DNA of 64,000 bases from Octopus sinensis (taxonomy: Eukaryota), in NCBI RefSeq assembly GCF_006345805.1, contig NC_043000.1:115196001-115260000 (forward strand). Direction: 5' to 3'. Below are positions 8,072 through 49,600 of the stretch, in pieces. The notes below the pieces were generated by a model that made no database searches, had not been told where the DNA came from, and was given only the letters and a program-made list of their open reading frames with translations. The position numbers were made by a program, and so were the translations under genes. The stretch's first letter is position 1, and the number at the start of each line of letters is the position of its first letter.

Positions 8072-49600
<41,529 letters not shown>

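Follow-up and report, generated by a model that had tools for sequence, protein, structure and literature searches.

Does an octopus Argonaute that carries asparagine in place of a slicer aspartate encode a guide-binding protein that no longer cuts its targets, or could A-to-I editing of its mRNA give the aspartate back? This question is raised by a gene on the minus strand of the window, the whole 64,000-nucleotide stretch of Octopus sinensis DNA that was analysed. The gene, referred to here as paralogue B, extends over positions 8072..49611 (minus strand) with 22 coding exons, stop codon included. The coding exons lie at 49611-49582 and 45714-45550, two upstream exons that were appended to the gene model afterwards, and at 42390-42183, 40147-40027, 38845-38664, 38074-37938, 36845-36711, 36164-36077, 34333-34250, 31998-31935, 28749-28678, 26683-26636, 23735-23613, 22297-22164, 20580-20396, 20129-19970, 14862-14772, 13788-13594, 11583-11449, 10651-10550, 9264-9065 and 8180-8072. 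Exons were located with a human AGO2 sequence, which also served as alignment numbering reference and tree outgroup, and GT-AG junctions were picked by score. All modelled junctions are GT-AG and the open frame is uninterrupted over the 22 exons. The spliced product is 100% identical to residues 9-929 of XP_029634731.1 (P0006 in our set, Octopus sinensis, annotated as 'protein argonaute-2-like'), while residues 1-8 are encoded by an exon outside the window.

The domain content and relationships of the product are those of an AGO-clade protein. Pfam searches with P0006 returned PF16486, PF08699, PF02170, PF16488, PF16487 and PF02171, corresponding to an N, L1, PAZ, L2, MID and PIWI architecture. 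The product is 70-84% identical to human AGO2 and to mollusc AGOs, and its PIWI region matched AGO1-4 structures with E-values of 1e-133 to 1e-146. In a neighbour-joining tree the gene is nested within lophotrochozoan AGOs and groups with the bilaterian miRNA-class AGOs. The N-terminus is distinctive in that a Pro/Gly-rich repeat exon (45550..45714, minus strand), with about eight PPGGL units, provides an extension found in paralogue B only and absent from its sister copy, paralogue A. The number of PPGGL repeats varies between O. sinensis, O. vulgaris and O. bimaculoides, and a Ser-rich tract is found in its place in Argonauta. No Rfam RNA family was found in the window. An intron contains a (TCTG)n-derived minisatellite of about 1.4 kb at 28879-30279, and the long open reading frames listed there are artefacts of this repeat.

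The substituted residue lies in a PIWI exon at 13594..13788 (minus strand; 65 residues with a GT donor at its end). The Asn codon, AAT at 13621..13623 (minus strand), occupies the third position of the catalytic tetrad and corresponds to human AGO2 D669 and to residue 739 of XP_029634731. This equivalence was established independently by a gapless 277-residue phmmer alignment against the human AGO2 sequences in the PDB, confirming the original prediction that the slicer Asp is replaced. The other catalytic residues were also correctly predicted to be intact, with D597 (GAT, 14820..14822) in GADVTH, the glutamate finger E637 (GAA, 13717..13719) in the same exon as the Asn, and H807 (CAC, 9115..9117) in PAYYAHL, all on the minus strand. 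A complete DEDH or DEDD tetrad is therefore absent from the window gene, whose tetrad is D-E-N-H. Two MID exons and the intron between them (19970..20580, minus strand; exons 20580-20396 and 20129-19970) carry the PGKTP loop together with Y529, K533, Q545, K566 and K570. As had been claimed for the loop and the guide pocket, the residues of the 5'-phosphate pocket (these five and R812) are conserved, and none of them is among the B-specific changes.

The Asn is not a chance variant. Asp fills the D669 column in 110 of 111 non-cephalopod AGO-clade proteins and in 136 of 150 diverse Argonaute representatives. A DENH tetrad was found in none of the 150, in which Asn at this column occurs only with otherwise degenerate tetrads (HPNQ, DGNS, DENY, PNNQ and DDNS).

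Two miRNA-class AGO genes are present in each octopod, as cluster membership shows for three Octopus species and Argonauta hians as now annotated. Octopod paralogue A reads FYRDGVSEGQF and its DEDH tetrad is complete. The O. sinensis copy is located on a different sequence record from paralogue B (longest contig 31 Mb versus 165 Mb). Paralogue A is 99.3% identical between Octopus and Argonauta and 97.8% identical between octopus and cuttlefish; paralogue B is 95.6% identical between Octopus and Argonauta, and 83.6% identical to paralogue A. Relationships were examined by distance only, with neighbour-joining trees of Kimura distances and 200 bootstraps. In these trees cephalopod A and B together are monophyletic (bootstrap 100%), cuttlefish A groups with octopod A (100%), and a partial gene on a 623-kb contig (L001) groups with octopod B as its deep sister (100%), the stem of B being about twice as long as that of A. 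A paralogue-A locus (L004) occurs in the same ENA assembly as L001, indicating one distant cephalopod with both copies. By these groupings, the duplication and the Asn are both older than the split between octopus and cuttlefish. Molluscs have been described as having no siRNA-class AGOs (PMC11114477), and the trees indicate a cephalopod-specific duplication of a miRNA-class AGO that took place before the octopus-cuttlefish split.

One sequence (P0004/L008) was considered as a B-type exon with Asp, and was rejected because it belongs to a non-cephalopod mollusc AGO, 87.6% identical to that of scallop; it therefore provides no date for the Asp-to-Asn change. In this non-cephalopod locus (ENA ERZ25069853) three exons are tandemly duplicated, at 1690-2018, 7821-8088 and 11778-12120, which suggests mutually exclusive alternative exons and agrees with the many annotated isoforms of bivalve AGOs. 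A separate observation concerns the glutamate finger of paralogue A, which is Asp rather than Glu (RQDII) in cuttlefish A (P0012 and its isoforms), in several transcript contigs and in L004 (9989-10186); the decapodiform-type paralogue-A sequences comprised L003, L004 and L005-L010, while octopod A keeps Glu. In the organism represented by L001 and L004, the tetrad of paralogue A begins D-D-D (its His position falls outside the locus) and that of paralogue B begins D-E-N, so that neither AGO-clade protein seen for this organism is canonical DEDH.

The earlier analysis had named a comparison with orthologues as a check on the substitution, and Asn was found in every B-type orthologue examined. 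Annotated orthologues from O. vulgaris, O. bimaculoides and Argonauta hians have it at the D669 position. It is also encoded, again as AAT, in a read assembly from another octopod (L002), whose introns are about 80% identical to those of the window, and in L001, where only exons align to the window. Assembly error and polymorphism are both excluded, the Asn being common to six independent sequences. Nor does paralogue B show signs of being a decaying pseudogene. Between B and L001, pN was 0.056 and pS 0.756 over 298 shared codons (pN/pS 0.074); synonymous sites are saturated, so that a Jukes-Cantor dS is not computable. Between B and L002, exon 17 has six synonymous codon changes and no nonsynonymous one. 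Paralogue B is under strong purifying selection and shows no decay. With the frame intact over 22 exons, GT-AG at the modelled junctions and this low pN/pS ratio, no supporting evidence was found for reading the Asn as an artefact, a polymorphism or a product of pseudogene decay, and we regard that reading, whose probability is negligible, as refuted.

Constraint has been accompanied by change elsewhere in the protein. At columns that are at least 97% invariant among the 111 other AGOs, B has 35 replacements versus 13 in A. Of the 35, 23 are paralogue-specific, including Q636K, E695D, D719N and V791A, and the Q636K codon (13722-13720, minus strand) lies directly beside the glutamate finger E637. 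Paralogue B has evolved faster than A and has passed through a burst of change.

Given a genuine and long-conserved Asn, three readings of its consequence were weighed. The original prediction favoured an editing-controlled slicer switch, in which ADAR, acting in some tissues or under some conditions, would convert AAU to IAU and so restore Asp and slicing in a fraction of the B protein. Recoding is extensive in coleoids, the rest of the B active site is kept slicer-like, and the A-A-A context of the target adenosine in octopods is not forbidden for ADAR. A probable A/G difference that changes Ser to Gly in paralogue-A transcripts, described below, adds that AGO mRNAs may be ADAR substrates. 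Structure prediction lends the switch no support. A small hairpin holds the target A in its apical loop, and this nucleotide is predicted to be unpaired, with pairing probabilities of 0.02 in the local fold, 0.03-0.23 in the spliced mRNA and 0.02-0.23 across local, pre-mRNA and spliced folds. A 600-nucleotide piece of pre-mRNA around the Asn codon is less stable than its dinucleotide shuffles (z = +2.14), and the Asn exon is covered by no arm of the inverted repeats in the 9-20 kb region, as far as the 25 longest listed go. When a 41-nucleotide probe was scanned against 34 kb of pre-mRNA (from the exon starting at 42390 to the stop codon), its best duplex partner reached -31.9 kcal/mol, compared with a mean of -30.8 and a best of -35.8 for shuffled probes. 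The search over exon and introns for an editing-complementary duplex, which the original prediction had proposed as a check, thus yielded none beyond shuffled controls.

The small hairpin is absent in L001, and synonymous changes between the window and L001 fall in the two codons before the Asn (TAT/TAC and AGA/CGG) and in the second and fourth codons after it (GTC/GTT and GAA/GAG), so that no reduction of synonymous divergence around the Asn codon is seen in this comparison. ADAR likes a 5' G least and prefers a 3' G, and the target adenosine, in A-A-A context in octopods, has a G on its 5' side in L001 (G-A-A). Being one edit away from Asp is itself uninformative because every Asn codon (AAY) is a single A-to-G change from an Asp codon (GAY); among the B-specific replacements, three others (D374N, R460K and D719N) are likewise A-to-G-revertible, while 19 of 23 are not. 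Moreover, a paralogue that keeps the Asp is already present. No AGO editing site appeared in the papers and supplements searched: the editing-catalogue supplements of PMC8382921 and PMC9068888 have no Argonaute entry, and no report of editing in any cephalopod Argonaute was found. Transcript-derived B sequence was not recovered either, as exon and junction-spanning queries yielded only exon fragments of genomic origin and short stretches of unrelated AGOs, and the B protein cluster has no transcript-derived member. With the target A predicted to be unpaired, partners no better than shuffles and flanks that are not conserved, the switch is unsupported rather than refuted, and we consider it highly improbable. 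Substantial editing of this codon to Asp in certain tissues or at certain temperatures, which would make B a conditionally activated slicer, is a similarly long shot; if true, it would explain why a slicer-like active site has been kept since before the octopus-cuttlefish split.

A second reading lets the genomic protein cut as it stands. Here the carboxamide of Asn would aid metal binding, and B would slice weakly or conditionally, for example with Mn2+ or with particular guides. The retention of D597, E637, H807 and their surrounding motifs over a very long time fits such activity, and human AGO3, an apparent non-slicer, does cut under special conditions or with special guides (PMC5714244; PMC9262622). 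By contrast, the D669N form of human AGO2 is regarded as lacking catalysis (PMC9154749), Asn at D669 has been used to trap uncleaved complexes for structure determination (5t7b), and Q636K lies with other B-specific changes near the active site. An Asn-tolerant slicer is thus unlikely, though somewhat less so than one restored by editing.

The reading that we favour is that the window gene is cephalopod paralogue B, an ancient AGO with a fixed Asp-to-Asn change that probably binds microRNA guides and most likely does not slice. B shows each of the features that mark a slicer-deficient paralogue: a substituted tetrad, retained guide-binding elements, purifying selection and a DEDH paralogue alongside. 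The best PDB match is 5t7b, a human AGO2 in which both catalytic Asp residues are replaced by Asn, and D669N is the standard mutation for obtaining a catalytically dead human AGO2 as a control (PMC9154749); by analogy with this engineered mutant, B has most likely lost slicing. The expectation that the genomic protein would bind guides and not slice is supported by an otherwise intact AGO with Asn at D669. The fallback offered with the editing proposal, a fixed slicer-dead paralogue, likewise agrees with the occurrence of Asn in all B-type orthologues while a second AGO in the same species keeps the Asp. What counts against a non-slicer is that the other tetrad residues and F676-type features of B stay slicer-like, which is unusual for an old one. 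As a guide-binding non-slicer, paralogue B would load small RNAs via its intact MID and PAZ pockets. It would then repress targets without endonucleolytic cleavage, like human AGO1 and AGO4, presumably in a cofactor-dependent manner, and slicing, where needed, would be left in octopods to the DEDH paralogue A.

Two further features of these transcripts and introns were recorded. Copies of a dispersed repeat lie in inverted orientation in the introns flanking exons 16-18 (10697-10939 with 18004-18246, and 12765-12914 with 18087-18236; 150-243 nucleotides, 86-87% complementary); by pairing in the pre-mRNA these copies could produce long double-stranded RNA within the introns, but exon 17 is not part of them. 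In addition, a lone A/G difference separates paralogue-A transcript contigs of different sequencing runs across 1,272 nucleotides of coding sequence and 79 nucleotides of 3'UTR. It distinguishes L007 from L009 and L010 at coding position 781 (AGT/GGT in SLEV[S/G]YQP), where Ser becomes Gly within U-A-G; the corresponding residue of human AGO2 is D697. The genome-derived cuttlefish protein has the Ser form, and a second species (L005/L006) also has G at this site, which is a candidate A-to-I recoding site, though it may be a SNP.

Paralogue B is a slicer-deficient AGO paralogue of a known kind that has arisen independently in cephalopods. Octopods have two miRNA-class AGOs, and the DENH copy is old, under constraint and distinguished by a Pro/Gly-rich N-terminus. 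The pair suggests that slicing and non-slicing silencing have been shared out between the copies, in an arrangement that arose independently of the vertebrate AGO1-4 split. MicroRNA repertoires are greatly expanded in cephalopods. No description of the Asn paralogue was found in the literature searched, and the finding is a modest comparative one without a new mechanism.

Restorative, or 'harm-permitting', A-to-I editing in coleoids is a process in which a genomic G-to-A change is undone by editing, and an editing switch for B would be an instance of this concept. B differs in that no paired target, conserved flanks or conserved favourable neighbour is seen, and because the RNA-seq needed is already public it represents a clean test case for restorative editing. 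Within cephalopods, two expressed AGO-clade genes have been reported in Euprymna scolopes (PMC8125070); in number they fit the A/B duplication, and they may correspond to A and B. The same study, which does not discuss catalytic residues, credited the octopus genome with a single AGO (PMC8125070), a statement contradicted by the two AGOs found in each of three Octopus species and Argonauta hians. Among known Argonautes, B most resembles human AGO4 (DEGR) and AGO1 (DEDR), lineage-specific duplicates with a substituted tetrad that keep the glutamate finger and guide binding and coexist with a DEDH paralogue (PMC9262622), as B does with octopod A; AGO4 is even changed at the same tetrad position. 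Unlike these, B derives from an independent, cephalopod-specific duplication, carries a single Asp-to-Asn change with the His retained, has no cS7-type loop change, as judged from its retained GQF, and bears a Pro/Gly-rich N-terminal extension. The identical replacement, at the aligned residue, is found in engineered human AGO2 D669N. D669N in human AGO2 is a laboratory mutation (5t7b carries both D597N and D669N), whereas the Asn of paralogue B is natural and long fixed, making B the natural counterpart of the laboratory mutant.
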